A DNA stretch of 64,000 bases from Bigelowiella natans CCMP2755. Lineage: Eukaryota; Protista; Cercozoa. The position numbers and the translations under genes are program-made. The stretch covers positions 1 through 64,000 of the forward strand of contig ADNK01001625.1 in assembly GCA_000320545.1 (NCBI GenBank), given 5' to 3'. Below, in pieces: positions 31,311 through 59,040 of the stretch. The notes beneath the pieces were generated by a model. That model was not told the DNA's origin and ran no database searches. It saw only the letters and a list, made by a program, of their open reading frames with translations. How positions within the stretch are numbered: position 1 is the stretch's first letter; the number at the start of each line of letters is the position of its first letter.

Positions 31311-34265
31311 TTAAACCTTATCAGAGTAGTCTTCGAGCAGAGGCATTATCAGTTTCAGACCCTTACGTTTACGTACTTCGAGTGCCTTCTCAACAGCAAA
31401 GCTACCCTCAATAGGCATCAACTTCTTGAGCTTAGGATCCTCAGCATACATTTCTCCGTTCATGAGCTGCCAGTGGGAGAAAATCATCTGTGGGAAAGCC
31501 ATACCGGAAGTGTTCTCACGGAGGAGTCCAGTAAAACCGAAGGACTCCAAGACAGGCAAGAAGGCCTTGATCTGTGTGAGAGGAGTTCCTGATCGTTGAA
31601 CTTCCTCGCTTACTTCACCACGACGCTGGGAAAGTGTGTTGTAAACTCCATTGAGACCATCCATAGGAACAGTGATATCGCAAAGGAACATAGGCTCCAT
31701 CAGGCGAGGACCTGAAGCAATCTGGCAACCGAAGATAGCACGTTTCATCGGAGGCATAATTTGTCCTGCACCACGGTGGATAGCATCGGCATGGAGGACA
31801 ACATCGTTAACTTCAACCATCATTCCTCGGATAGCCTCACCACACAAGACTCCTGCGCACATAGCTTGCTGGAATGCAGTCTTAGTGGAATCCTTAATTT
31901 CGTTCAAATAAGCGACTCCCTTAGTCATATCGATCAGCAAGTTGTTCTTAGCATCTTCGATACCAAAGGACCAAATCTTACGAGCAGATTGAAGATCAAG
32001 TTCTCCCTTGGTTTCATCTACGATAATGCGGGCACGTTTCTTGAAGTCCTGGTTTTGGGTGATCATACCCTCATCGATCAAGTCGACAAGAATTTTCGAC
32101 ATATTTCTTGCTGTGATATAGAGACGGTTGTGCTTGTTTGCAGACTTTCCAACAATATCCTTAGGTGTCTCCTTTGTGATGGTCTCACAGAACGAGACCA
32201 CAGGCTGCCCCTCGACAATCGGTGCCCCCTTCATATACTGTTCAGCAAGATCTTTCAGGCAAATCTGAAGGTGCAGCTCACCACATCCCGCGATAATGTG
32301 TTCTCCGGTCTTTGCAGTGTAGCATTGAACGAGAGGGTCGGACTTGGAGAGACGCTTAAGACCTTCCATTAGCTTGGGTAGATCAGCAGCGTTCTTCACG
32401 TCGACAGAAACCTTGACGACAGGAGAAACACTGTATTTCATATCGACGAAGTTGTGTGCCTTATCATAGGTAGTAATAGTTCCTGACTTGGTGAGATACT
32501 GGTCAACACCAACAAGACCACAGGTGTTTCCACAAGGAACATCAGGAAGCTGCTCAACGTAGCGTCCCATCATAAGAATGGTTCGCTGAATCTTCTTAAT
32601 GTGAAGATCGGTCTTACGTCCAGGGGTATAATCAGGACCCTGAATGCGAACCTCCATACCTGTAGCTACGGTACCGGAGAAAACACGACCAAAAGCGTAG
32701 AAACGTCCCTTTTCATTAGTAGGAATCATCTTGGAGATGTACATCATCAGAGGTCCCTTCGGGTTACAGGTGGAAATGGCCCTTGCAGCTTCGTCGTCAA
32801 GAGGACCCGAGTACAAGTTTGATACACGGTATTTCTGAGCCTTTGCTGGGGATGGGAGGAAATGAGCAATCATTCCAAGAAGTGCCTGAGCAGCTGGAAG
32901 CCAGGTTTGCATAATGCGCTTAAGAAGAGGCTTACGGGTTAGATCGCGGGCGTCCTTAGGAATGGTAATCTCAATGTTTTCAAGAATTTTGTCATACACT
33001 TCCTTCTTGTCATTCATTACTGCATCCATGAGTTCCCCAATAGGTTCCATGATCAGCTTGCAGAAAGCACGCTTTCGAGCCTTTCCAGTCTTCGAATTGA
33101 ACTGTTTCTTGAAGAACTTGTCTTTCTTTGACATGTAGTTCTCACCCCATAGCTTGTGCATAGTCTCCACACGAGACATGTTCAGCTTCTTAGAGTACAT
33201 GTGGGAGAACGTATGGGTAGTGAAACCCCAACCGTGAAGTCCAGATCCGAAACCAACAGTCCCCTTTTCTGGTGAAACGCTGATCTCTCCAAGAAGGTCA
33301 TCTTGGTAGTTCGCAATGATTACGTTTGCGGATTCGATAGCGCGGGAGAAGGATTGATAAGCTTCCTCAGCAGGCATATGAAGCTCCAAGAAGATACGGT
33401 CAAGTTTGTTCACCCAGAGAACTGGACGAATACGCTCTGCAATTGCTTGGCGGAGGACAGTTTCTGTTTGTACGCACACACCCTCGATGCAGTCAACCAC
33501 CACCAAAGCTCCATCCGTAACACGAAGAGCTGCTGTCACTTCGGAAGAGAAGTCAACGTGACCTGATAGTAGGTTTCAGGAGTAAATCCAGAAAGGAAAA
33601 GAAGGAATAACAAGGAAGAGAAAACGGATTAGCTTCACGGAGATGGGATGGTCTAGCAGTTCTCATCAAAATTTACCAGGGGAGTCGATAAGGTTAATAA
33701 GGAAAGGAACTTTTTCCTCGCCAGTTTTCTTCTCAGTGAAAGCTGCCTGGCATTCGGCTGGTTCCCACTCTTTGATGGCAGCCATCTTAGTTTTGTATTC
33801 TTCTCCTTCACGATCCTTTTTCTTCGTTTGTTCCTTAAGGTTTACTTTCTTAATTTCCTTCTGACGAGTAACGAAACCTTTCTTGGGCACGCTGAAGAAA
33901 AGGGAAACACCAGTGGATTTAATGGTGATGGTACGGTCCTGCTCATCCTCACGAGTGTCCATGAAACGGGTGTCACCAGCTTTCTTCTCCGCAATAATTC
34001 CGGCAGCACCGATAAGGGAGTCGGTCAAAGTGGATTTACCGTGGTCGACGTGTGCAATGACGGACAAACAACGAATGTTGTCGGACTTGGACATCATGCC
34101 ACGGATCTCATCGACAGTAAAGTTTACCTGTGAAAGGCAAACAACTTCAGGGAAGACGACTAAACAAAACTAGACACAGCAACATCCCTCCTCTTGACCA
34201 CAGATTATCGCTAAATTGATTAGATATCCAACACAGAGGGATCTTCAATGCGTATTGTTTACCAT
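31311..34265 (-). CDS. EEF2: Eukaryotic translation elongation factor 2; exons 34263-34265, 33677-34127, 31311-33562
   Basis: [52 protein letters not shown], diphthamide loop [15 protein letters not shown]. Two GT-AG introns at 34128-34262 and 33563-33676. Confidence 0.98.
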
Positions 34266-35601
34266 GTTGACGTAGATTTAGCCAGGTGTTCGTCCCTTTT
34301 ACGCTAATTCGAATAGGTGAGGGGGGGTGCGGAGATATAGGTGGTCCGAACTGCCTTTAGTGCCGTAGGCCGTAATTGAGACTTCCTCGTTGCTGCTGAC
34401 CACGTTCGCAGGCAACGTTCATTGTATTTTTACCGAGCGACAACACACAATTTTATCAATAATATTGATAATCTCTCGGCTTTTTTCCAATTATTACAAG
34501 CATATTTTTCTTATTACTGTACAAATATTCATAAATTAATTTCATTATTTAAGATAAGTAAGTTTTTTGTAATATATAAATCTTACTTAAATTTTGGATC
34601 GCAGTTATCAAATTGCATTCAATTTATCTTATTTGGAGGATTCGAGTTTGCTGGATGCATGTGGTATTCTACTCAGATAAATATCGATCAATAATTGAAA
34701 TAAAATATCCTTTTAAGACAAAATATACACTAATTTGAGTAAATATGAAATATATCGCAATATATTTAAAGATTATGAGCATTCTCGCTGCTGAAATACT
34801 AGCTTACTCGTAAAGAAATCGAAATATCAAATTAATATCAATACACTTAAATTTCCGAAATAAAAAATAGATGTATATCTAGCTCAATGAGAACGAAAAC
34901 AATGCAAATATGCTATTTATTTACGGGATCAACTATATTCTAACAAGATCCTAAAGGCTGAATTAGGGTTTGCACAGACCCAAAAGGATATGCAATGTCT
35001 CTTGCTACTCTCTTCAAAGTTATTTCAGATTCAAAATTAATATTTGTCTTCATAATGCCTGATATTTACCACAATATGTAGAATTTTTTGTAAATTTGAT
35101 ATTTTTAGAGGAATGTTTGTGGATAATGTTCAGTAAGATGTAATATATAAATCTAGAAAAAATATTACCGAGAAGGTTTGAGAAGCATATGCACTTCTAT
35201 TTTTTGTAAACAATGTGCTTGATACCCTATTTTCTTACAGGAAGGCAATGGTTTGAGAGGCACATCTCTTGATCTTCTTTTTTGTAGTTGGCTCGGCCGA
35301 TAAATTAAATACTTCATTTCCCCGTGGCTTCCTATTGTTGAAAATGTGGGAAATTTTTAGTCCAGGAGAAAGACCTGCAGATCGCGATTTAATTGGATTT
35401 TTCCAAAATAATATCCCAAAGTCGGCCGATAAGTTAATATCGGAGAATCGGAGAATTTGAGCAGGTGACGGTGGGAAGCGCTTGGTGTGGTGGGGGTGGG
35501 GATCCAAACTGGTTCTTTGTTATTGAGTCTGGTTCAGCATTTATAGCTCAATTATTTAGTCAAAGCAATGTATGTGATATATTAATAAATTTCTTAGAAA
35601 A

Positions 35602-36102
35602 ATGCCTCTTCCATCGTCGGACCTCAAGTGGCTTCTTATCCGCAAGCACAACTCTTTTCAAATCAAAAAAGACGGGATCACATTTACAACCGAGCCATGC
35701 AATCCAACAAACATTAGGTTCGGTTATATTAACACTGTTCTATTATGAAATTTCTTATTTTGTGTTGCGTTTAGCTCGTTCAAATTCTCTGGCCTCGCGA
35801 ATGACAAGTCTGTTAGCGTTTCCAGTGTTAACGGAGAGAAAAAGGGGATTGAACTCATTGTAAAAAGCAAGAACGGTTCCAAGCCAAAGCGTACATTCTC
35901 AAAATATGGTTTGAAACGCTACGGCAATAAAAAGAATGTTTCCGCCATTGAAAAAGCAACAAAACTTAACTACTATCGTGGGGATCTCACAAAGGCTACT
36001 GTCGCAAGATACTTGAAACTCAGAGCTGCACTTAACACCAAGCACACCGACATCAAAACCATAATTGCGGCTATGAAAGGAAAGGAAGATAAGGACGAGT
36101 AA
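35602..36102 (+). CDS. RPL28: 60S ribosomal protein L28 (eL28), intron 35718-35774
   Basis: MPLPSSDLKWLLIRKHNSFQIKK...FTTEPCNPTNISSFKFSGLANDK...YYRGDLTKATVAR matches eL28 (S.DL.W..IR.NNSF, EP.N..N..S.K.SGL, YYR.DL). Confidence 0.92.
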
Positions 36103-36199
36103 AATGGACAAATTCAATTTTTAGTTCAAGAAGCGCTTGCAGCCTGTCCTGCGTAAACTCTAGTGTCCTTTTTTATACACTCCCCCCCTTCATTCACAC

Positions 36200-36411
36200 A
36201 TTCTACTCGTATAGCATGCACGCGTGAATACACTTAGATGGAAACATCATGCGTAATCGACTTGACAATGATATGCGAGATCACGTCCATTGGATTCTGA
36301 GATCATGTACGTTCATTGAGACTCGCTTTGCGTCCACCTGCACGCAGGCAGATCTGGAGAGTACATGCATGCTCATACACCCATACACACAGTGTGCAAT
36401 AATGAGCAATG

Positions 36412-36448
<37 letters not shown>

Positions 36449-38000
36449 ACAGGCCTGATCTAGTGTTGCTACCATGCACATGCAAGCATCTGGCTACTAG
36501 GCATGTCTAGATGTGCATCTATGTTGGATCGAGAGTGCTGCATGCTGTCACAACGTAACTCCGTCAAACCCGGTGACGTCGGGGTTTTGAATGCTGCCAC
36601 AACTCCGGCAAACCCGGCAACGACCACAACTAGGCGAATGAAAGCGTGCAAGTGAGCTGCGCCGGCTCATTTGCAATGAATGCAAGCATGCACGTGTTTT
36701 TTTCGCGCAAACGCTTTGCATGCAATCTAGCAATGCTGTGGTTGTCATTCTGAACACACTGAAACGTGTTTTGACCAGTTGAAAATGTTCAGTTTTTTGC
36801 TGCATCGCGCGGCTGAAATGATGCCAAAACGACACCTCACTAGCTCAGAATCCAAGTCCATCCATGCCATGCGTCACTGACAGTGCTAGAGTGTGCACGT
36901 GTGCACCTAGAACTGGAGAAGACTGCAAATGTCCATATACTGCGACCACCACAAAAAATAGTCTAGGTGCAGTGTGACATGGACTTGGATTCTGAGGTGT
37001 CATTTTGGCATCATTTCAGCCGATGTAGCAAAAACTGAACATTTTCAACTGGCCAAAACTGGTTTCACTAGTTCAGTGTGTTCACAATGATCGGTATATC
37101 GGCGCCAAGCGCTCGCGCGAAAAAAACGCGTGCATCGCATGGCTCACATCTGTGCTTTGCGACATGCAACGCTAGAACGGTTCAGGCTGCTTGTCGCCAT
37201 TGAGTTCATCTTCAGATGTTGAAATTTTGGCTGTCTGTCCATCGCGACTAGGACATGATCGCAAACTGATGTGTGAACTGAATGCGTGTGCAGCAACGCA
37301 TCAGTTTCCAGGTTTGTCTGACTGGCCTAGTGGCGTTGCACCGAAATTTCCAGAAAACTCTGAAAAACACCCCGCATTTCAAACCACAAAAAATCGCACA
37401 AGTGTGGACTTTGCATGAGTTTTGGACCATGTCATGTCATCGAACCGACTGCAATCACGTGGCATGGTGGCTGTGTAGCTAGATGTGCGATGCAAGCAAA
37501 AAATGCAGCAAAGTACGGCGGCGTCCTGTTCATCTCAACCATGTCTTCACATGTGTCTGTTCTTGCACATCTAGACACACCTGATCTTTCATTTCTGCAC
37601 ATGAACCTCTAGCTAGCTAGACCTGGACTGTGAATGACGGGCTGCTCTGATGTCATCTAGCTATTTGGACAGACTCATCATCAGCCGCAAAAATACCTAG
37701 ATGTGTGTGTATACACGGGTGAGCAGTGCATTGTCGTTAACCATCTGCAATGCACTTGCTGACGCTGCACACTAAATAACCACTGTGACCAATGAACACG
37801 TCGCTGTCTAGCTAGCGCTAGAGCGTTCAATGTGACTATGCGATAGATCGTGCAACCAACTTGTCTCTACTACTAGTCTACTACGCGTGGAGTACCTATT
37901 CTGGTTGATGGATGTTGGCAGTTTGCGATCATGCTAAGTGATCATGCTAGCTACGCGCATGTGCAATGTGCACTGCGTGTGTAAGCATGCACAATGCTTA
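36200..38000. other. Intergenic island with strong TpA depletion and CTAG scars
   Basis: atgt, caat, ctca, agtg, ttca, aacg, tggc, acct and agcg duplications around CTAG; few TA outside CTAG. Confidence 0.9.
36686..37137. mobile_element. Degenerate foldback/MITE-like element: ~180-bp inverted repeat arms (~36686-36870 and ~36970-37137)
   Basis: Arm 1 gttttgaccagttgaaaatgttcagtttttt...ctgaaatgatgccaaaacgacacctca...gaatccaagtccat is the reverse complement of arm 2 atggacttggattctgaggtgtcattttggcatcatttcag...aaaaactgaacattttcaactggccaaaac. Confidence 0.75.
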
Positions 38001-38055
38001 GGTCGGTGGTACGTTTCATCCTTACGATATGATTTATCTTTGAAGATTTGGCGCT

Positions 38056-39636
38056 ATTATTTGTACCACACGAATAAGTAATCGCAATTGATTTTGACGT
38101 TTACTATTTCAGCCTTTGTTGAATACAGCAGGCCAATGCTTTTATTCACATTTTCCCCTCTGGAAGACGTGTTTGGGCAGCTGCCTCTTTCAAAGATTCT
38201 GCTCTTCGAACGTCGGGAGGTATTGACACTGACTCGAGGATTGCATTTTTTTCTTGCTCAATTTTTTTTTCTCTCTGCACCTGGATGCCTGACATGTCCA
38301 GCTTAAATTGATCCTCAGCGGCTTTTTCACCTTTTACAAGTTTCCGAATCTTCCGCTGGAATTCGGGCAAAAATTGATCGAAAAAGCTATCTATCCAACC
38401 GACGCTTGCATGTTGACCTCGATAAGCTGCAAGCTTCGAATGTCCATTAATTAGCCACATAGGATGCTCTGCGCCGTGAAGCTTATCTTTTTGACACGGT
38501 TGGCCGTTGCTTATACCAGCTTCAACATGTCCAGTATACACGTGAAAGGGGTTGTTACGCCATAGCATTACTCTGTAAACAGGAAGAACACAACTCTTAC
38601 TTAAAGTGTAACATGGATCTCCGGGTGCACGAAAATGTGTGGTGTGCACAAACATGCTCAGGTTATTTGATTGCTGCATTCCAATAGCATATTGTCTTCC
38701 TGGTGGAGGAAATGGATAGTGAGGAACGAATGTAGCACGATCCAAGCTTGTATCGTCAATTTCTCTTGGTTGTGTCCAAGAAATGACTCTCTGGAAATTT
38801 TTATCTATGTCTTTTAGTTCCATATCAGCCATACTCTCTCCGATCTGAGTTATGAATCTCTCACCTGTTATTCCATTATGTAAAGCAAAAAAACGAGTTC
38901 AGAAAGAGTAAGCATGATTTGTTCGTATTTACCGAGATCCATAGTATAGGGATTTGCTGTAAGCCAGTATTTGACCCAAGGAGTCAATAGAAAACCGACC
39001 GAAAAAGATTTTAAGAATCTCCAGTATCCACGACGCAGTTGCATTCCACCACAAGCAACAACACAATCGCTGAAGTGCAAGTATAAATTCGGACCAGATT
39101 GGTATGGGCGAAGATATTTGAAGTTATTCTTAATATTTCCGCATTTACAAGACAGAATACAGTAAATAATCCCTAATATAGTCATCGCCAGAATATCAAA
39201 AGCTAAGTTAATCATAATCAGAATCTGGGCAGGTAAACTCAGGAACCACTGCACAAGTACATGCAGCTTCCAAGAGAAAGATTCTCTAGAAATCATGGGT
39301 ATCGGCTTTGGTAGACTTCGGAAGAAGTAATAGTTTGTTGCAGTGGGAGGAATGAGGAACAGGATCAAAATCGGTAGAATTATGAGTAGTTTTGGAATCA
39401 CAAATATGAGTACGACACCTAAACAATGAACGATACATGAGAAAGAATAGCTATCATATTCATTTGCTTCAATCTATTACCTCCAGAATAGTAGTCTGTC
39501 CAACTAATCTTATGAACAAGCCATGGGCTATCACGGGAGGTATCAACCGTCTGATGAACAATTCGACTCATATGTTCTAATTGCTCCTTGGTCTCGCCTG
39601 TTTAGATAACGTGTGAGTAAGTGAGTGAGTGAGTGA

Positions 39637-39693
<57 letters not shown>

Positions 39694-39960
39694 AGAGAGG
39701 GAGGGAGAGAGGAAGAGAGAGCGAGCGAGAGAGAGAAAGTATATGTATACGTGTTGCTAAAAAAATATACATAGAGTTACACACTACATATTTCGAGGAA
39801 AAACGATGAGAAACTAGTCTCTCAAACGGCAGGCAAAAAGAACACCTCTTTTCGTGTCCACAGCGATTGGAAATACCGGATTTTTGTATGGTACTGTGTT
39901 ACACGGTGCATAGAGATTGAGGTTGCTCTTAAGTGGTATCTTTTCTTCGTGAGTGGACAT
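38056..39960 (-). CDS. Uncharacterised multi-exon protein with N-terminal hydrophobic (transmembrane-like) segments; 3' end approximate
   Basis: Long open exons at 38146-38860 and ~38930-39420 are bounded by GT/AG. ATG at 39958-39960 (MSTHEEKIPL). No family recognised. Confidence 0.6.
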
Positions 39961-41779
39961 GGTGGTGTGGTAGTGGTGGAGCACGGAATCTGGGTGTAGC
40001 ACTAGTCTGAAAGAAGACCCGATTTTCGGTCCGTTAGTGTCAGGGAATGGATGAATTGGGGGTTAAATCCATTGGTTCGTCAGTAGTTATCCTAGTCGCA
40101 TCGTTGACTTCCCATGGTCCATGCTCATTCACCGAAGATGTGATTTTCATAGTAGATCTAACCATAACAACATCGATTTGGGTTTTGAGGCAGCATGCAC
40201 CTCGAGATGCACCTACTAACTACCGACCCCCAGGTATGTACCAAAGCCAGTGCCGGCGCAGTCTAGGGTTGGCAATAAGATGCAGAACAAAGTTTTTGCT
40301 TGGAAGTCTGGCGAGGTGAACCAATTTGTGAGGACAAGGGAATTGAAAAAGGAGCTGGCAAAAACCCTGCTGGTTGGCTCCTGCTTGGAGTCGGCGATCT
40401 TGCCAATTATAATGGCATATACTGCTCCAAATACTTTCTTCGTTCCAAACAGAGCCTGTGCTGGGCCTGTTATGTTGGATCCCACATCAGGTTAAAATGC
40501 GAGGTGGGCGGTGTAGATGCTGTTAACAAGTGATTATGATGGCTATGGCATACACTAATTGCATGCGGCGATTAGATAGCTATAACATATGTTTCCCATC
40601 TTCTTCTACGATAATAAACACATCTACATCTTCACTAAAGCTCTTCATTGCAATATTCGTAAGGGTTATTAAGACAAAGAGAAACCTCTTGGGTACATAT
40701 GAGAAGTTGGGACGTTGCAGTCGATTCAACGTTGTACATTCGATGTGGGTGAGTGGACACGTGTTATGAACATTGAGAGGATTTAATATAACACTCAGCT
40801 TCTCCTTCCAATACGTTTATCACTAGGCCAGCAGTGCATGCAATCGGGGTGGACTCTTACAAGGAGATGATAGGAGATAAGTGAGGACATAGCATTTCCC
40901 CATATTCTGTCTTCAATCTTTATTTTTTCATGGCTACTCTTTTAGATTAATTTGCGGCTTAGGTATTTCGGTAAATATTATAAATTTCCACTGGCTGGTG
41001 TCGTAGGAGTGGCAATTTATCTGGGATACTGTCCAAGTAGTTCTTATTCTAAATATACACTGCTCTGAGCGTTTTGCAGTCTGACTAAAGAGTGATATCC
41101 ATGATTTTAGTTGCCGAAAATCAATTGTTGGTCGACGCAATAAGACGTGAACATAAACATCACTGCAGAGTATCAACTGACTCGATTATCTCACATGTTC
41201 GTAATAATCAGGTTCCTTGATAGCAGGAATAGTCGGAATTTCATTTAAGATACAAAAGGGGAAGGAAACCGAAGGCAGTGAAGAAAAGGAAAGGTGAACA
41301 AATAAGAAAACAGTTTTATATTTGCCAGGTAGCAGCCCCTTTTATTTGCTCATATGTTCCCAGCCATTGCAACACCAAAACAGCAAGATGGAGCCGTAGA
41401 TTTGGAGGTTCAGAGGCTGGATTTGAGACCTGGAAGACAATAGACACTGCAATTTTCGAGCCTACCACGATGAAAGATCCTTCTACGTCATGCGAGTCGA
41501 ACTTTCGCTTGAAAAGGTTGGTATAAAAATCTTAAGAGAAAATTACAAAGTGAGTGCACGCTACATTCCTCATCATGCAGTAAGCCAGCAAGTTTTCGGA
41601 TACATCTTACTTCAATTGATGCAGTGCGATCATGGGATTTTCAAGTGATTTGTGTACCATCTTTGTTCTTTGTTTGCTCTTTGAACTTCAGGTTGACAGC
41701 ATTCACCTCGTCCAAAAGAAACGGATTCATTGGTTGCCTAGCCTTGGAATGGAGCGAGGTGACAGAATTAGCAAAAACA

Positions 41780-51239: not shown

Positions 51240-51728
51240 TCGTTTAATTTTACGGCTTGTGAAACAAAAATGGCGGGATTGCACGTTGCAATGTGCGCTT
51301 GCCATGCATGCACATTGATGAAGGTGGAGCATGCTAGCACAGCTAGATGGTCAACACAAAGGTGACGTGCATGACCAGATGCCAGGTTGACAAAGTTGAT
51401 GTGTCACTTTGTCATTGAGTGATGACACGTCATGCACATCGATCTAGACATCCTTAGATCCATCACGCAACATCATTTTGTGATGTGTTCAAGACGACAC
51501 AGCACTGCAGTCTAGCAGCACAGCACGTGAAGCATGTCTGCTGCTAGCGATCTAGCGATGTCTAGATGTCTAGATGTGTGGCATGCATGCCCAGGTGCAC
51601 CTCTAGACCTGTGGCTTGTGTCGCGTGTGCCCCCCTCTAGCCCTAGCTAGCCTAGCCCCGCTAGCCCGCTAGTCCACCTGCTAGCCTGGCTGGCTGGCTA
51701 GCTGGGCGACACGTGCCAGAGCATGCTG
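51240..51728. other. CTAG-scar/TpA-depleted island, left flank of the retrotransposon
   Basis: cgat-CTAG-cgat and atgt-CTAG-atgt-CTAG-atgt at 51548-51577; also acct, ccct, cccg, cctg and ctgg duplications. Confidence 0.9.
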
Positions 51729-52150
51729 TGCAACGGCGGAAAATTCAAAGGAATTTGACCGTTGAAAGTGGTCAATCAAGTCAAGTTGATCCCGTTGAAA
51801 TGCCCTGCAGTTTTGGCAGTTTTGGGTTTGGTTGGTGCTGTTAGTTGATGAGCAAATTGAGTCATCAAATGGGAAGCAAGTGGTTTGGGAAAACCAAGTT
51901 TGTGTGCACGTAGCTGCCTCGATTAGTCAATGGCAGCGAACCCGCATCTGGCAGTCAGTTCGCTAGAAGTTTGAAAGCGGTCAGTGTGTTTGTTTGAGCG
52001 TGCACATGCGTGTGTTCTGAAGTCACCAATGTCATCAGGGTTTCATTGTTCATTGGAAAGTTTGATTGTTTTTGCTGAATGAGCGGCGACGAGCTTGCTA
52101 GTTTGGCAGAGACAGAAGCCGACACTGGGAGGATGCTCTCAGTGGTCGCA
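51729..52150 (+). repeat. 5' LTR
   Basis: Matches 57816-58237 except at 5 sites (7 nt). Confidence 0.96.
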
Positions 52151-55100
52151 GATGGCAGCGGCGCAGTGGAAGGAAAGGAAAAAGTGCCAGAGGTGATGCA
52201 CATTGAAACAGGAGGACCTGTTGCTGCAGGTGCTACAGGTGACTTGAAGGAATCCAATTGGCAGGAAGTTCTGCTCAGGATGGAAATTGACAAGTTTCGA
52301 ATGGTCCTGGAAGGGGTGTCCATCCAGGAGAAACTGGCGGTTGATTTCAACAAGGATGTCCGCAGCTTGCGAGACAATCGCAGTTCCCGCAGGTTCTTCA
52401 TGGATCGACATGGTGACAAAGGAGTGCCGGAGAAAACGTGGAAATGCTTCACAGAAAATCCGGAAGTAGCGGAGGACTTGACAGACGAGGAAGATGCAAC
52501 GGTAGCAGAGGAAAAGAAACAAAATGAAATGCGAGAACAAGACATCGGGGATCACCGAGGAATGTCTTGCAGAGCGAAAGCTGTGGAAATGTTCGGAAAG
52601 AAAATCAAGGTGAGGGGAGAACTAGACCCAGCCTTTGTTTGCCGTGAAAAGTTTCGGAAGAGGGTGAGAAGAATCCAGAGTCAAATCGCAGGGCACAGCG
52701 AACTCTTTGGAGCGGATGTGAGATTCGGATGCGAGTTCTTCCGAACGACATTGTCCCAGGATGCACGGGACAGATTCGACCTGCACGTTGAAAAACAGGA
52801 GAAGGAACGGCAACACCAAATGGATCATCGCGAGAAACTCGAACAAGGAATGCAACACCTGTGTGGCGAAGAGTCCCCGCAAGACACAAGGTTTGGGTTC
52901 AACAAGGAGTTTGACAAACTGCGAAAGGAGAAATTCAGATTTGTGGACCAAATGCATGGCAAACACAAACAAGTGTGCAGTCTGTTCCCGACATGCAAGA
53001 TTGACAGGTGCGACAGGATGAACCATTGCAAAACACCATTGCAAAACCACAGATGTGGTCGATCCCTACTCCTAGCCATGGCACATTGCGATGCCACGGG
53101 TGTGACTCCAGCCGAACTCTTCAAACAGCTGAGAATCAGAGAGGAAACAATTCAGGAGTCACAACCGAAACACAACAGTGTGAATGCAATTGGAATGGAA
53201 GGGAACAAGAAGAAGAAGATCTGCTTCAACTTCCACAAAAAAGGAACTTGTCGATGTGGAAATGAATGCAAATGTGGTCATGAGAAAGGAGGGAAGTCCA
53301 ACAGGCTGTGCAAACATGTCAGAGAGGGAAAATGCAAATGGGGCAAGAGATGTGGATTCTCGCACGACCTAGGGGACAAAGCGGCAAATTTGTCGAAGGT
53401 CACAGTGGATGCGAGTCACCCCAAAGTGAACCCTAGCCCCCATCCCTCTTCTGACACCTTGAACAGTGACTGGAGGGAATCCGGCAAGGACGTAGTGCAA
53501 ACTGTGGAAAACGATGTGACAGAGTTAGCAAAAATGAACATCCCACAGGTCAACATCGCCTCTGAGCCCCACAATGCAAATGAGTCTTTGCGCCAACGCA
53601 ATGTGCTGAGGGCATTTGTGGAAGGCAAGAGTGGACCTGCTGAGATGAAAGCACTCCTTGACGATGGATCGCAGCCTGCCACCATTGGCCTGCAAAAGAT
53701 CAAATTGCTCAGCAAGCTAGGTGCAAAAATGAAAAGGACAAAGATGAGTGGCCAGGTTGGAGGTTCAAGCACTACCTGTGTCCGCATGGAGGGTGAGGTG
53801 GAATTTGAGATGAGAGTGAAGTGCAAAACCGCTCGGGGGGGATGCGTGAGGCTCAGGATTTTTGCTGTGGTCCTGGATGGGAATGCAAACTTTGAATTTG
53901 CAATTGGCCAAGATGTGAGAAACCCACACCGCATCATGTCGCACCCAGACCCCAAACCCGAACACCGTGAAGTCACAATTGATGGCACACCTGTTTGCTC
54001 TCATCCCTGCACTTCTCACCTTCGAAATGCGAACTCACTCATGCTGGAAAGCAACTTGCTGGCCTCACCTGCAGTAGCCCAGGATGCGGGCATCAACGAA
54101 GGCAAACGAAACAAAGCTAAAAGGCCATCAAATTCATGTCTAGTCCATGAAACACTCGACCTGTTGGATGCAGCGGATTCCCGATTGAGAGAGTGCGACC
54201 ACGTCTGCGGTACGGGGGTACCTGATGAGGAAATTGAACACAGTCTCGGTGAGATCGCATCGCTCCAATGCGTCCACAGAGAATCAGAACGTGCCAATGC
54301 GGAACTTGCTTCGGGAGACTGCTTGCGCATGCTGAACAGAGCAGAGAAAGAGTTCCGCGCGGGTTCCACACTCATGACGTCAAGAGAACAATTTTGTTAC
54401 CTACGTCGTGTCCTGTGTCGTTGTTCGTCGCGATTTGTGGAAAACACACCTGAGACAGGAGAATCACGTGTGCCGAAACATGAAGTCCACGATTACCTTC
54501 TACCAGGAAAGAAATTTGTGCACCAAAAGGCTCACCGATTGCCCCCGGACAGATCAAATGCGATGGAGACCAAGTTAGAAGAACTGGAAAAACATGGGTT
54601 GTGTCACAAAGTGTCGAATGAAGAAAAAGTGATGGCCACTTCACCTGCATTTCCTGTCTGGGACAAAGGCAAGAGTGCCTGTCGGGTGGTTGTTGGCATG
54701 AAAAAGGTCAACGATGCTGTGGAATTGATGCACTTCGTCATGCCGACAACGGAAAACACCATGCGGAAAGTGATGACGAAAAACTGGGTGACATCAACCG
54801 ACGCTAAATCAGGCTGGCCACAGACAGGGTGCACAAAGAAAACGCAAATGACCTTCGTATTTGCAACTCAGAAATGTGCTAGATCAAGTTTGGGCCTACC
54901 ATTTGGATGTGAAAATGCTCCTCAGACATTTGCGTGGTTGATGATCCAAATCATCAAAGGACTCAACGACACTGTGGTTCATGTGGATGATCACTACAAC
55001 ATGGGGGACACGTTCATGGCAGCATTGTTGGAGTTCACCAGATTTGTGCAGAGGGCTGAGACCAAGAACTTGTACCTGTCTGCTAAAAAATTACAAGCGT

Positions 55101-57700
55101 TTCCAAAAGAGTCATCCATGGCAGGAGTCATCAGGAAAAATGGCAAACATTGCCCAGACCCGAAGAGGATGTGTCCCCTGGATGCACTCCAACCACCCAA
55201 AAAGGGAGCACGATTCCTCAAATCGGTGCAACGCATCATGGGATTGTTCATCTGTCATCTACGACATGTCAAAGACTTCTGGAATGTTGTTCGACCTGTC
55301 AGCATCCTGAATTCAAAAACAGCTCCACAAGTCTGGGGAAAAGAACAACAGATGGCTTTGGATGCTGCGAGGGATGTGCTGAAGTCTTCGTCTTTGTGCA
55401 TGCCTAAGTTCGAACACATTGCCCGTGAGAGTCCATTCCTTGTGGATGTGGATGCGTCTAAATGTGCTGGTGGAGCTACTCTGTCTCAAGTAGTTGATGG
55501 GGTGGAGCGCCTCACATGTTGCTTCAGCTTCACCTGGCGCAAACATCAGATGAAATGGCACGCAACAAGAAAAGAATTTGACAACGGTGCTAGGAGTCTG
55601 GACTGCTTCAGTGTCTTCATCAAGGGATTTCCAACGCGTGCAAGAATGGATGCAAAGGTTGCCATGCACATGGTGGCACATGGACAAGATCAATTGCGCG
55701 AACCTCACACCAGAATCTCCGCAGCTTGTGACTCGTGCATGCTAGTGGGTGTTGAATGCAGAGAGGGCCCGAGCCACAAAAATGCGGATTGCATTGGTAG
55801 GCCTGGACACAGTGTTGAAGATGATGCGGATGAAGAAACACTGGTCAATCTCTTCCCTCTCCACCATGCTTCGGCAATGCTCAAATGCTTTGGTGATGAA
55901 TTGAAAAATGGCACCTGCTTGAGCTGCAACCAACCGGCAGTTGGACACCATCCCACAGATGCAGAGGTTGAACTCACTTGCTCACAACTGTGTCATGATG
56001 TGGCGAAGAAGGTGGGCTTTGACGAGTCCAAGTTTCGCATCCTTTTCAAAAGGACAAACACAAAAAACAAATCAAACCAGAGCAAGCTCACTCCTGAAGT
56101 TGATGCTGCGCGCTTCGACGGGGACTCAATGATCCACCCGTGCTCCACGTTGGCGCATGAAGCAGATGAACACTTGGAGAACTGCAACACAATGGAACAC
56201 GGAATGGAGTTCTCACCTTCACAGTCGGACAGTGTGGAGGTGGAGCTCAAGTGCGATGTGTCATCTGAGCGCCTACCTGCAGAACAACGGGCAGAGTTCA
56301 CCAAAACATTCGCAGCTCTAGAAAACAAAGGCAATCCAAATCATGCTCTCACTACGGCACAATGCAAAATTGTGGACAACACCTTGTGCAAGTGCGGCGA
56401 CTGTGAGAACGACGACCACAGTGTCCCTTTGCTCATTGTGGTTCCTGATCAACATCGGACTGAAATCATGGACGCCTACCACATGACGAATCTTGCAAAT
56501 CACAGATGTGCAAATGACATGGCAACAAAAATCCTGCAAGTACATCACTGGAAAGGCTTGACGTGTTCATGCAAAAAACATGTTGCAACCTGTCAGGTGT
56601 GCATCAGAACAAAATCTCGCATGAAGCAATTGCCTTGCAAGCAGCTACAGATGAGAGGAGCAATGGAAGCCGCATCGATTGATGCCATTGGACGCACAGA
56701 AGGAAAGTGTCACTGCACACTGAATGCGTGCATCTTGTCGATAGGACATGTTTTCGCAAAATGCTGCAAGAAACTTGACGCTAAAGTCATGGCAGAGTTT
56801 CTGTTCGACTTCATTGTCGTGTTTGGTGCACCTCGCAAGATCCTTACTGACCAGGGACCTGAATTTGTGAACAGCGTCATGTCACACTTGAAGAACAGAT
56901 TCGGTTTTGCAAAACTCACCACATCGAGTAAATCCAAAACGGGCAACTCACTAATTGAAAGAAAGAATGGAGTGCTTAATGACGGAACATTGGCACAGCT
57001 CACACAACAGTCTGAATCGAGACACAATTGGCACAAAGAATTACCTCATGCTGTCTTCTCAGCTAATGCTTTGTTGCCTAATGCTCGAGGAAACTCGCAC
57101 GCTAAGCTCCTGTTCGGGTTTCAACCCAAGTTGGAAGGAGACTTAAACGGCAAACGTGCACCTGTGAGAGAGGAGAAAGTCGGAGACGACATTGACTCTC
57201 GCATTCAAATTGTGAAGAAGATGAGACAGTTGTTCCTGACGGACAGATCTGAATGGAGATTCTTGAAAAACTTTGAACGCAATGACAAGATGGGGCAACT
57301 AAAACGACACAAAGTGGGGGATCTAGTGTGGTTGCACCGTGATGAGGACCGCAAAGGGCATCGTGTTGCTCCGCATTTCGCGCTGAAAAAGACAGGCCCC
57401 GTCCTGATCACAGCGAGCATTGGAGATTCCAACACTCACAGAGTGGAAGATCCTGAAACAAGTCATCGAAACGCAGTTCATGCAAAGCACTTGTCTCCCT
57501 TTGGCACCTTCACAGCATCACCGGAAGCTGCAGTGCCACCACAGGATGAAGCGTCTTCGTCGGAGAGTGATCAAGATCTGTTCAATGATTCATCGGGGGA
57601 TGAGGAAGAAGAGGATGATGCTGACATCAGTGCACGCAACATTCTGATGCACACTCGTACCCGCAAGGCACTTGATCGTGGAGCCTTCGTGTCACATTGA
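52079..57700 (+). pseudogene. gag-pol ORF (1873 aa), open but probably non-functional
   Basis: Two CCCH fingers; protease ALLDDGS; RT LPFGCENAP...VVHVDD; RNase H VDVDAS...NADCIGR; integrase H..H..C..C, SIDAIG, ILTDQGPEF, NSLIER. Only about 5 Tyr; the YxDD Tyr is His. Confidence 0.88.
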
Positions 57701-57798
57701 ACTTGCAATGGAAGTCCAAGTTTCTGAGTGTTCCGTTCAGTTTGTGCAAGTGCACACAGATTGTTGCATCAAGTTAGTTTTGCGACGTCCGCAAATTC

Positions 57799-57812
57799 AA
57801 AAAAGGGGGGAA
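57799..57812 (+). other. Polypurine tract
   Basis: AAAAAAGGGGGGAA ending 3 nt before the 3' LTR. Confidence 0.85.
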
Positions 57813-57815
57813 TGA

Positions 57816-58237
57816 TGTGACGGCGGAAAATTCAAAGGAATTTGACCGTTGAAAGTGGTCAATCAAGTCAAGTTGATCCCGTTGAAATGCCCTGCAGTTT
57901 TGGCAGTTTTGGGTTCAGTTGGTGCTGTCAGTTGATGAGCAAATTGAGTCATCAAATGGGAAGCAAGTGGTTTGGGAAAACCAAGTTTGTGTGCACGTAG
58001 CTGCCTCGATTGGTCAATGGCAGCGAACCCGCATCTGGCAGTCAGTTCGCTAGAAGTTTGAAAGCGGTCAGTGTGTTTGTTTGAGCGTGCACATGCGTGT
58101 GTTCTGAAGTCACCAATGTCATCAGGGTTTCATTGTTCATTGGAAAGTTTGATTGTTTTTGCTGAGTGAGCGGCGACGAGCTTGCTAGTTTGGCAGAGAC
58201 AGAAGCCGACACTGGGAGGATGCTCTCAGTGGTCGCA
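57816..58237 (+). repeat. 3' LTR
   Basis: Direct repeat of 51729-52150, followed by TSD TGCTG. Confidence 0.96.
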
Positions 58238-59040
58238 TGCTGTGCCAGTGTGGCATGGCTAGATGGGGCGGAACACACACACAATGCTTGCTCCAGTGCT
58301 GATCATTTTTCTTTGAGCTCTGGAGCTGAGCTCTGCAGGCCACCTAGCTAGCTAGCTAGCTAGCTAGCTAGTCATGCTGGCATGATCTCTTGATCTGATG
58401 ACTGCCAAACTAGACGATGTCGTCGATCTGGACACGTGCTCGTGGTTGTGTGCGCCAGTCCAGCAGCGTGGTCGTGAAACAACGCATTGTTCACACGGCC
58501 CTCGTTTTTTGCAAAGGCCAGAGCGGCCGATTGACGCATCAGCGGAGGATTCATGAAGGTGCCGTTCCACTGACGTCCAGACGTGTTGATGTGTTCTGTT
58601 GTTTCGTGTGGTGCTCAGCTTGTGCACGCAGTGATCGCTATCAACCTGGCTGGCTAGCTGGCCTAGTGCCAGAGTGGCGCGCAATGCGAAGTTCAGTGTC
58701 AACACCCACATCACCAGAACACACCAACCTGGCAACCATGATCATCTCAATTTTCAATTTCAAACTGTGCACAAACTTCGCGTTTGTCTTGTCCGTGCGT
58801 CCCAGCGTTCTGGCGTTGCCTGGTTGTGCCAGTCTGGCAGCCTGCATGGCTCCAGGCGGTCTGTGCATGGCCAGCTGGAAGTCTGGAAGTGTGGCTCCAG
58901 TGTTGTCTCTCAGCACACGTGTGTGCAAGTCTGGAAGTTGTCAATTCACAGTGATGTTGATCCTCGCGACCATTTTTTTGTGCGCAGTGACGCATTGCTA
59001 GCTAGATCTAGCCAGATTGGTCACGTCCAGAGCCGTCAAG
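58238..59040. other. CTAG-scar/TpA-depleted island, right flank; includes (CTAG)7 at 58344-58371
   Basis: atgg-CTAG-atgg (~58255), ctgg-CTAG-ctgg (~58650); almost no other TA. Confidence 0.88.

Follow-up and report, generated by a model that had tools for sequence, protein, structure and literature searches.

We analysed positions 1 to 64,000 of contig ADNK01001625.1 from the chlorarachniophyte Bigelowiella natans CCMP2755 (hereafter "the window") and found that a repeat copy at 36625-37543, once in place, received at least seven 8-bp insertions of identical type, each consisting of CTAG and a copy of the 4-bp target. The resulting pattern, NNNN-CTAG-NNNN, is called a scar in the following. 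The process behind it is a strictly 4-bp staggered opening of the target in which CTAG is always left. The strict stagger, the symmetric target, the invariant palindromic filler and the precise join point to an enzyme of the dimeric transposase or integrase type, and we consider the scars, with a probability of roughly one half, to be the footprints of a yet-unseen cut-and-paste element with CTAG ends. The mark would then be a kind of transposon footprint, although there is a real chance that it is something new.

Part of the repeat copy is an imperfect inverted repeat at 36686-37137 that matches itself with E = 3.7e-26. Its arm pairs (I1-I5) are complementary at 88-100%, and at about 94% overall outside indels. 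A search of the 91.4-Mb assembly found at least 12 genomic copies of the repeat family, with both arms in each. Since the homology of the window copy with 8 other full copies extends from about 36624 to 37512-37543, the inverted repeat is the inner foldback of an old ~920-bp non-coding repeat (the carrier) and not a stand-alone hairpin:
36625-37543: copy of the ~920-bp non-coding repeat family, identified by homology to 8 other full copies
36686-36865, plus strand: arm 1 of the internal foldback (pairs I1-I5)
36979-37137, minus strand: arm 2 of the internal foldback, identified by arm pairing and assembly matches

The original prediction, made from the letters of the window, was that the CTAG scars are insertions which each arm acquired separately once the inverted repeat had formed. 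The letters on which it relied are exact: CTCA-CTAG-CTCA in arm 1 (36836-36847) faces a single TGAG in arm 2 (36993-36996, used by both pairs I2 and I5), and TTCA-CTAG-TTCA in arm 2 (37064-37075) faces a single TGAA in arm 1 (36760-36763). Because two arms alone give no polarity, we aligned 22 arms of 12 copies and used the roughly 20 arms of the 11 other genomic copies as the outgroup. Both sites were short, i.e. empty, in every other arm. Therefore, we conclude that both arm scars are insertions postdating the arms of this copy, as had been predicted; the family consensus contains neither the CTAG nor the duplication, so that the short alleles are not microhomology deletions.

The same was seen in the whole family. 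Nine aligned full-length copies carried 15 perfect scars, and wherever a perfect scar could be aligned, most or all of the other copies had a gap of 8 bp there; at a few positions, more than one copy had been scarred independently. Filled and empty states thus occur at homologous sites with the empty state being ancestral, as for excision footprints. The number of scars per carrier copy ranged from 0 to 7, the window copy having six perfect scars and an aged one. Within the 452-bp stretch of the inverted repeat (36686-37137), there were four perfect NNNN-CTAG-NNNN sites, compared to about 0.02 expected. The scars of the carrier copy and of the island around it are:
36503-36514: ATGT-CTAG-ATGT, same island, outside the carrier copy (from the scan of CTAG flanks in the window)
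36723-36734: CAAT-CTAG-CAAT, in an arm 1 segment without arm 2 counterpart; missing from all other copies
36836-36847: CTCA-CTAG-CTCA, arm 1; private, with a single 4-mer and no CTAG in arm 2 and in all arms aligning there
36882-36893: AGTG-CTAG-AGTG, in the loop between the arms; no alignable outgroup
37064-37075: TTCA-CTAG-TTCA, arm 2; private, the insertion being present in no other arm
37168-37179: AACG-CTAG-AACG, within the repeat's unique right half (from the copy alignment)
37304-37315: aged scar GTTT-CCAG-GTTT (CTAG with TA changed to CA); private, and deleting 8 bp gives back the family sequence
37323-37334: TGGC-CTAG-TGGC; private, with a gap in the 8 other copies
37605-37624: ACCT-(CTAG)3-ACCT, a scar re-hit in its own CTAG (window scan)
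37814-37825: AGCG-CTAG-AGCG, right edge of the island (window scan)
The ~25-bp stretch that holds the scar at 37168-37179 had received independent insertions in five of the nine copies, and close to the position of the TTCA scar, a few bases off, an unrelated copy (contig C940) bears a separate scar, ATGT-CTAG-ATGT.

Exact 4-bp duplicated flanks were present at 58 of the 285 CTAG sites of the window, where about 1 was expected, and at 141 of 896 sites in 264 kb. The length of the duplication is fixed. In the window, the flanks matched over exactly 4 bases in 55 cases, over 3 bases in 6 and over 5 bases in 5; exactly 4 bp were duplicated in 55 of the 66 cases with at least 4 matching bases, and the tail of 5 or more was at chance level. 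Genome-wide, CATGCTAGCATG (CATG-CTAG-CATG) occurred 3,828 times, compared to 7 times for the backwards control and 9 times for CATGGATCCATG (CATG-GATC-CATG). Since CATG makes up about 10% of the targets, the genome has roughly 4x10^4 perfect scars in total. Contigs from three DNA runs that were filed separately span 36455-37418 without any difference, showing that the scars are no assembly artefact; the three runs revealed no scar polymorphism between strains or lines at 35200-40200, which, as they are probably of the same strain, carries no information on activity. Searchable literature on CTAG footprints, 4-bp duplications and Bigelowiella transposons yielded no description of the CTAG mark. 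New at this locus are the polarity test, the test of plain 4-bp additions, the target logo, the figures for precision and decay, and the support by independent reads.

The target logo, obtained from the 141 scars in 264 kb, is two-fold symmetric, (C/A)NN(G/T), as expected of a dimeric transposase or integrase. Position 1 of the target-site duplication (TSD) was C, A and G at frequencies of.55,.28 and.05, and position 4 was G, T and C at.47,.39 and.03; the TSD was preceded by C (.40) and followed by G (.40). CTAG (20/141) and CATG (14/141) were the commonest targets. As the same positions were scarred in independent copies, target choice is guided by sequence, and the large differences in scar number between copies suggest that location also matters.

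The join is precise: variants with 7 additional bases within the CATG bracket amounted to about 4% of the perfect scars (genome-wide, 108 CATG-TAG-CATG vs 20 for the controls and 105 CATG-CTA-CATG vs 26 for the controls). The process also re-hits its own CTAG. Indeed, CATG-(CTAG)3-CATG was found 60 times genome-wide and 0 times in the controls; these triples correspond to 1.6% of the CATG scars, which is near the share of all CTAG sites that bear a CTAG-target scar, and 5 of the 13 triples in the sample were still bracketed by the first duplication.

Scars decay mainly via TpA to TpG/CpA changes. The cores between 4-bp duplications in the sample were CTAG (121), CTGG (40) and CCAG (31), at a background of about 9, and in the CATG bracket genome-wide CTGG (508) and CCAG (505) far exceeded CTAA (65) and TTAG (62). 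About a fifth of the scars has decayed in this way, from which it follows that the scar process has been running for a long time. TpA to TpG/CpA hypermutation is a separate, published process of B. natans (Mettrop et al., bioRxiv 10.64898/2026.01.13.699255). The changes seen here fall mainly at TpA, in both strand senses, and hypermutation would also be responsible for the TA/TG difference between the arms that had been noted correctly in the beginning; at this site, the 20 arms variously have TA, CA or TG. The shared ground ends there: hypermutation produces base substitutions, and the preprint makes no mention of CTAG or of 8-bp insertions (bioRxiv 10.64898/2026.01.13.699255).

The original prediction had a second half, according to which the process has two stereotyped outcomes, TSD plus CTAG (+8) and the TSD alone (+4). 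The +4 outcome found no support. Neither of the two examples given for it is a clean 4-bp target duplication. The sequence atcgcgcggc (36804-36813) does contain a real insertion, absent from every other arm, but no tandem copy of a neighbouring 4-mer. For gtccatccat (36856-36865), the letters are present, but the difference from arm 2 is +11 (CCATGCCATGC) and not +4. The differences between the arms other than CTAG scars are:
36717-36724: TGCA-TGCA, the sole clean 4-bp tandem duplication in the arms, absent from the original observation; a single TGCA in the family (arm alignment)
36801-36802: TG where arm 2 has TA (37026-37027); TA, CA or TG across copies
36806-36811: (CG)3, compared to (CG)1 in every other arm; an insertion, not a TSD
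36856-36865: GTCCATCCAT, contained in the +11 difference that lies at the arms' inner end, where arm homology stops

Indel lengths, which had been expected to peak at +4 and +8, showed a distinct +8 CTAG class (the 15 perfect scars) and no +4 peak. Private insertions of 1 to 8 bp in the nine full copies numbered 11, 6, 8, 7, 4, 8, 4 and 5, respectively; +4 accounts for 7 of 61 private insertions, one of them a clean tandem copy, and the arm alignment agrees. The only clean 4-bp tandem copies in the family are TGCA-TGCA (36717-36724) and a CATG-CATG in a different copy. Exact two-copy 4-bp tandem duplications were about as dense in scar islands (4.7 per kb) as outside (4.1 per kb), and compared to a third-order Markov model their excess was about 50% in both (islands, 102 vs 65±8; outside, 1018 vs 682±20).

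Insertions outnumbered deletions by 49 to 7 in the family arm alignment. Published mutation-accumulation lines had 15 de novo insertions (1-11 bp) and 6 deletions; three of these insertions were +4 and none contained CTAG, 7 of the 15 ended in ACA, several of them in AACA, and there was one multi-base change, TGGC>AACA (bioRxiv 10.64898/2026.01.13.699255, Table S2). The ACA-ended insertions could be tandem copies or could represent a second stereotyped filler. The excess of 15 to 6 resembles that of the family alignment. Since short insertions arise de novo and 4-bp duplications are alike inside and outside islands, we conclude that short insertions are a general trait of this genome and suffice to account for what arm 1 has gained besides CTAG. 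Short additions, those of +4 included, would then be part of a background of small duplications and short insertions that is general in the species.

A hint that +4 doubling of CTAG occurs inside a scar came from CATG-(CTAG)2-CATG, which was found 76 times genome-wide, compared to 0 in the controls, and is about as frequent as the triple. This bracketed (CTAG)2 may come from a fill-in version of the join, or from plain cut-and-fill at CTAG. Unbracketed (CTAG)2 was rejected as +4 evidence: about 16 of 26 cases are decayed triples, with CTGG, CCAG or similar adjoining.

The island that contains the carrier lies behind a gene whose transcript end is marked by RNA reads:
36268, plus strand: poly(A) addition site of a plus-strand transcript (13 RNA reads with loose A-runs behind 36268)
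RNA depth was 45-140 at 35868-36368 and about 0 from 36369 to 38000, and the scar island begins about 230 bp downstream of the poly(A) site. The island is therefore untranscribed DNA just behind a gene end. A (CA)n microsatellite (36417-36447) is located between the poly(A) site and the first scars. Scar islands are rich in CATG, TGCA and GCTAGC, and CATGCATG reached about 4.5 times its expectation in the 264-kb sample.

We propose that a scar would correspond to one insertion-excision cycle of a low-copy DDE-type transposon with a 4-bp target duplication and CTAG (or CTA...TAG) ends. During excision, one strand of the terminal CTAG would stay on each flank, and the two overhangs would anneal and be ligated to give TSD-CTAG-TSD; being self-complementary, they would yield a single product. 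There are chemical precedents. In Minos of the Tc1 family, 4 terminal bases stay between the TA duplications because the cut in the non-transferred strand falls 4 nt within the element, and piggyBac excision involves precise re-joining of 4-nt overhangs. A cut-and-paste element of this type would gain no copies by moving: the scars (~4x10^4) would accumulate while the element stays at a few copies. Because the element would not multiply, scars would outnumber it by orders of magnitude and it would escape notice.

Several observations weigh against this proposal. We searched the window and then about 300 kb for paired CTAG sites whose 4-bp flanks match and whose termini are inverted, and for over-represented CTAG-initial words. 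The output consisted of tandem repeats and stacked scars only; the ~300 kb contained no CTAG-ended element that combines inverted termini with a 4-bp duplication to match. A Pfam search of the assembly for DDE domains gave 15 hits for Harbinger, 3 for hAT and 2 for pogo-like transposases, which normally duplicate 3 bp, 8 bp and TA, respectively, and not 4 bp. Tc1 (DDE_3), MULE and IS4/IS5 domains had no hit in the assembly. Neither did piggyBac and mariner, for which the control genomes were silent too, so that their absence is not shown. Sola, Ginger, Academ and Chapaev, which make 4-bp duplications, have no Pfam models and lay outside this domain search. Moreover, tens of thousands of footprints without a visible element are unusual for a transposon, and the restriction to untranscribed DNA behind genes requires an extra assumption, either targeting or selection.

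The mutation-accumulation lines contained 0 CTAG insertions among 21 de novo indels, although by a rough estimate only about 0.5-1 was expected. The published rates are 3.5x10^-10 per site for base substitutions and 7.9x10^-11 per site for indels (bioRxiv 10.64898/2026.01.13.699255). With the former rate and the faster TpA decay, the perfect state of a scar lasts, as a rough figure, about 1-2x10^8 generations, and maintaining ~4x10^4 scars therefore requires roughly 2-4x10^-4 events per genome per generation. The lines total about 3,100 generations, as calculated from 21 indels at 7.9x10^-11 per site and 85 Mb, which at the required rate gives the 0.5-1 event, so that the zero count carries no weight.

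The two pogo-type (DDE_1) matches, at C2661:202080-202535 and C2845:6046-6501, have identical scores and lie in open frames of 600 and 543 amino acids. From these features, the pair could represent a DNA transposon that is young, low in copy number and perhaps active. The hAT matches are at C2149:11338, C2351:208686 and C2036:88857, and a Harbinger match at C777:78413 has an open frame of 527 amino acids.

Like the excision footprints of Minos and Sleeping Beauty, the scars have a duplicated target around a few constant bases, which in those two transposons derive from the element ends. Tc1/mariner elements, however, duplicate TA only, leave two or more footprint variants and are present in the genome, whereas the CTAG scars duplicate 4 bp of almost any sequence, have one palindromic filler and belong to no known element. 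The 4-bp stagger and, in the proposed cycle, exact re-joining by self-complementary 4-nt overhangs are shared with piggyBac excision, which differs in requiring TTAA and in leaving no trace. Sola, Ginger, Chapaev and Academ also duplicate 4 bp of variable sequence, and Sola has been reported in protists, but no CTAG footprint is described for these four in searchable papers.

Two transposon-based variants of the explanation were rejected. A piggyBac-like "flap" model, with CTAG overhangs and off-target landing, would on paper add 4 bp but no duplication, or else leave no CTAG; nor should it produce scars where the target is CTAG, which is the commonest target (20/141). A hAT reading, with an 8-bp duplication whose middle is replaced, was discarded as the target logo lacks the hAT pattern nTnnnnAn. 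The carrier repeat itself was likewise rejected as the scar-making agent: it has CTAG only at bases 6-9 of a longer inverted terminus (CACAA-CTAGG...), and no 4-bp duplication.

The strongest rival to the transposon footprint reading, though clearly the less probable of the two, is a host activity: a domesticated transposase or integrase, or a nuclease-ligase, would cut DNA that lies untranscribed behind genes, with a stagger of 4 bp, and seal the breaks with a CTAG filler, and no mobile DNA would be involved. It would agree with the failure to find an element in ~300 kb, with the intact long frames of candidate hAT-, Harbinger- and pogo-type transposases present at low copy number, with the strict location of the island behind a poly(A) site and in DNA without RNA, and with the extreme uniformity of the join; furthermore, another targeted editing process, at TpA, runs in the same species. 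Under host editing, which we think possible but improbable, each CTAG seal would introduce a stop codon on both strands and a frameshift. A weaker form of such a novel reading would be a hyperactive element with CTAG ends, of very low copy number and from an undescribed superfamily. Against host editing, the simplest source of a constant filler is the ends of a DNA that has since left, and we know of no enzyme that adds a fixed tetranucleotide at a break.

Misrepair of breaks by type IIA topoisomerase (Top2) is unlikely. Filling in both ends of its 4-bp staggered break would give a 4-bp duplication, and the stagger of exactly 4 bp, the symmetric site preference and the position of the island behind a gene end would all fit. 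Top2 mutants in yeast and human tumours acquire 2-4 bp duplications (the human indel signature ID17), which likewise involve a 4-bp staggered break, filled in to a 4-bp duplication; Top2 accumulates and acts between converging genes. Those duplications are plain, without filler, and the plain +4 class predicted as the main product is not enriched in islands (4.7 vs 4.1 per kb, with the same ~50% Markov excess); the invariant CTAG would have no source.

Abortive products of a retroelement integrase are more doubtful still. The window does have a candidate, a Gypsy-type long terminal repeat (LTR) retrotransposon at 51727-58236 with an uninterrupted frame of 1873 amino acids that includes an integrase zinc domain besides reverse transcriptase and RNase H. 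The cores of its LTRs (~300 bp) agree at 99%, the duplication flanking it is 4 or 5 bp long depending on the reading, and dense scar islands adjoin it on either side (51548-51694 and 58255-58650, with a (CTAG)7 run at 58344). However, the LTR ends here are not CT...AG, integrases do not excise, and there is no mechanism for exactly 4 inserted bases.

Two further explanations are refuted: ancestral long alleles shortened by 8-bp microhomology deletions, which had in their favour that the direction of change cannot be read from two arms alone, fail on the ~20 outgroup arms empty at both sites, on the insertion polarity of all alignable scars in the nine copies and on a 400-500-fold genome-wide excess of the filled pattern that is beyond deletions, and an assembly or sequencing artefact fails as three independent DNA runs give every scar at 36455-37418 and as scars are copy-specific within the repeat family.

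[quoted passage not shown] It differs from them in having no identifiable TSD, and its CTAG (bases 6-9 at both ends) is internal, not terminal. The left end of the window copy is CACAA-CTAGGCGAA; its right terminus is missing, and other copies end in ...TTTCGCCTAG-TTGTG. In several other copies, the carrier ends are CACAACTAGGCGAAAAG and its reverse complement. No consistent duplication of 2-5 bp was found around the copies having both ends.

Some derived indels are common to both arms of one carrier copy and absent from other copies (36624-37543; loci L002-L028), for example the AAGTCCA stretch of the window copy or, for C1597, ACAAGATTG. Such sharing suggests either that the arms evolve together or that they descend from different source elements. 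To the left of the carrier, 36557-36622 contains a 22-bp direct repeat (AACTCCG.CAAACCCGG..ACG) with two occurrences 44 bp apart, and a 33-bp piece of it was found again near two other carrier copies (C2660 and C940).

Elsewhere in the window, an open frame of 742 amino acids on the minus strand (31311-33539) has elongation factor G/EF-2 domains and is an ordinary host gene, useful for placing the island. Positions 1-114 are (CCCTAA)19, beginning at base 1 of contig C2112, i.e. the contig starts at a telomere.

To summarize, an entire class of intergenic DNA in a model chlorarachniophyte has been built by one precise 8-bp insertion that is present in about 4x10^4 places. The locus described here is a natural experiment in which two arms and ~20 outgroup arms fix the direction of change, and which shows that the hits occurred recently, independently of one another and under guidance by sequence. 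With a symmetric logo, a 4-bp stagger and a precise join, the enzyme to look for is a dimeric one resembling a transposase or integrase, and CTAG ends together with a 4-bp duplication are the signatures by which the agent can be sought. If the agent is a transposon, it would be an extreme case, a mobile element known solely by its footprints. If it is a host activity, the scars would represent a new kind of genome editing and a second genome-marking system of B. natans beside TpA hypermutation.

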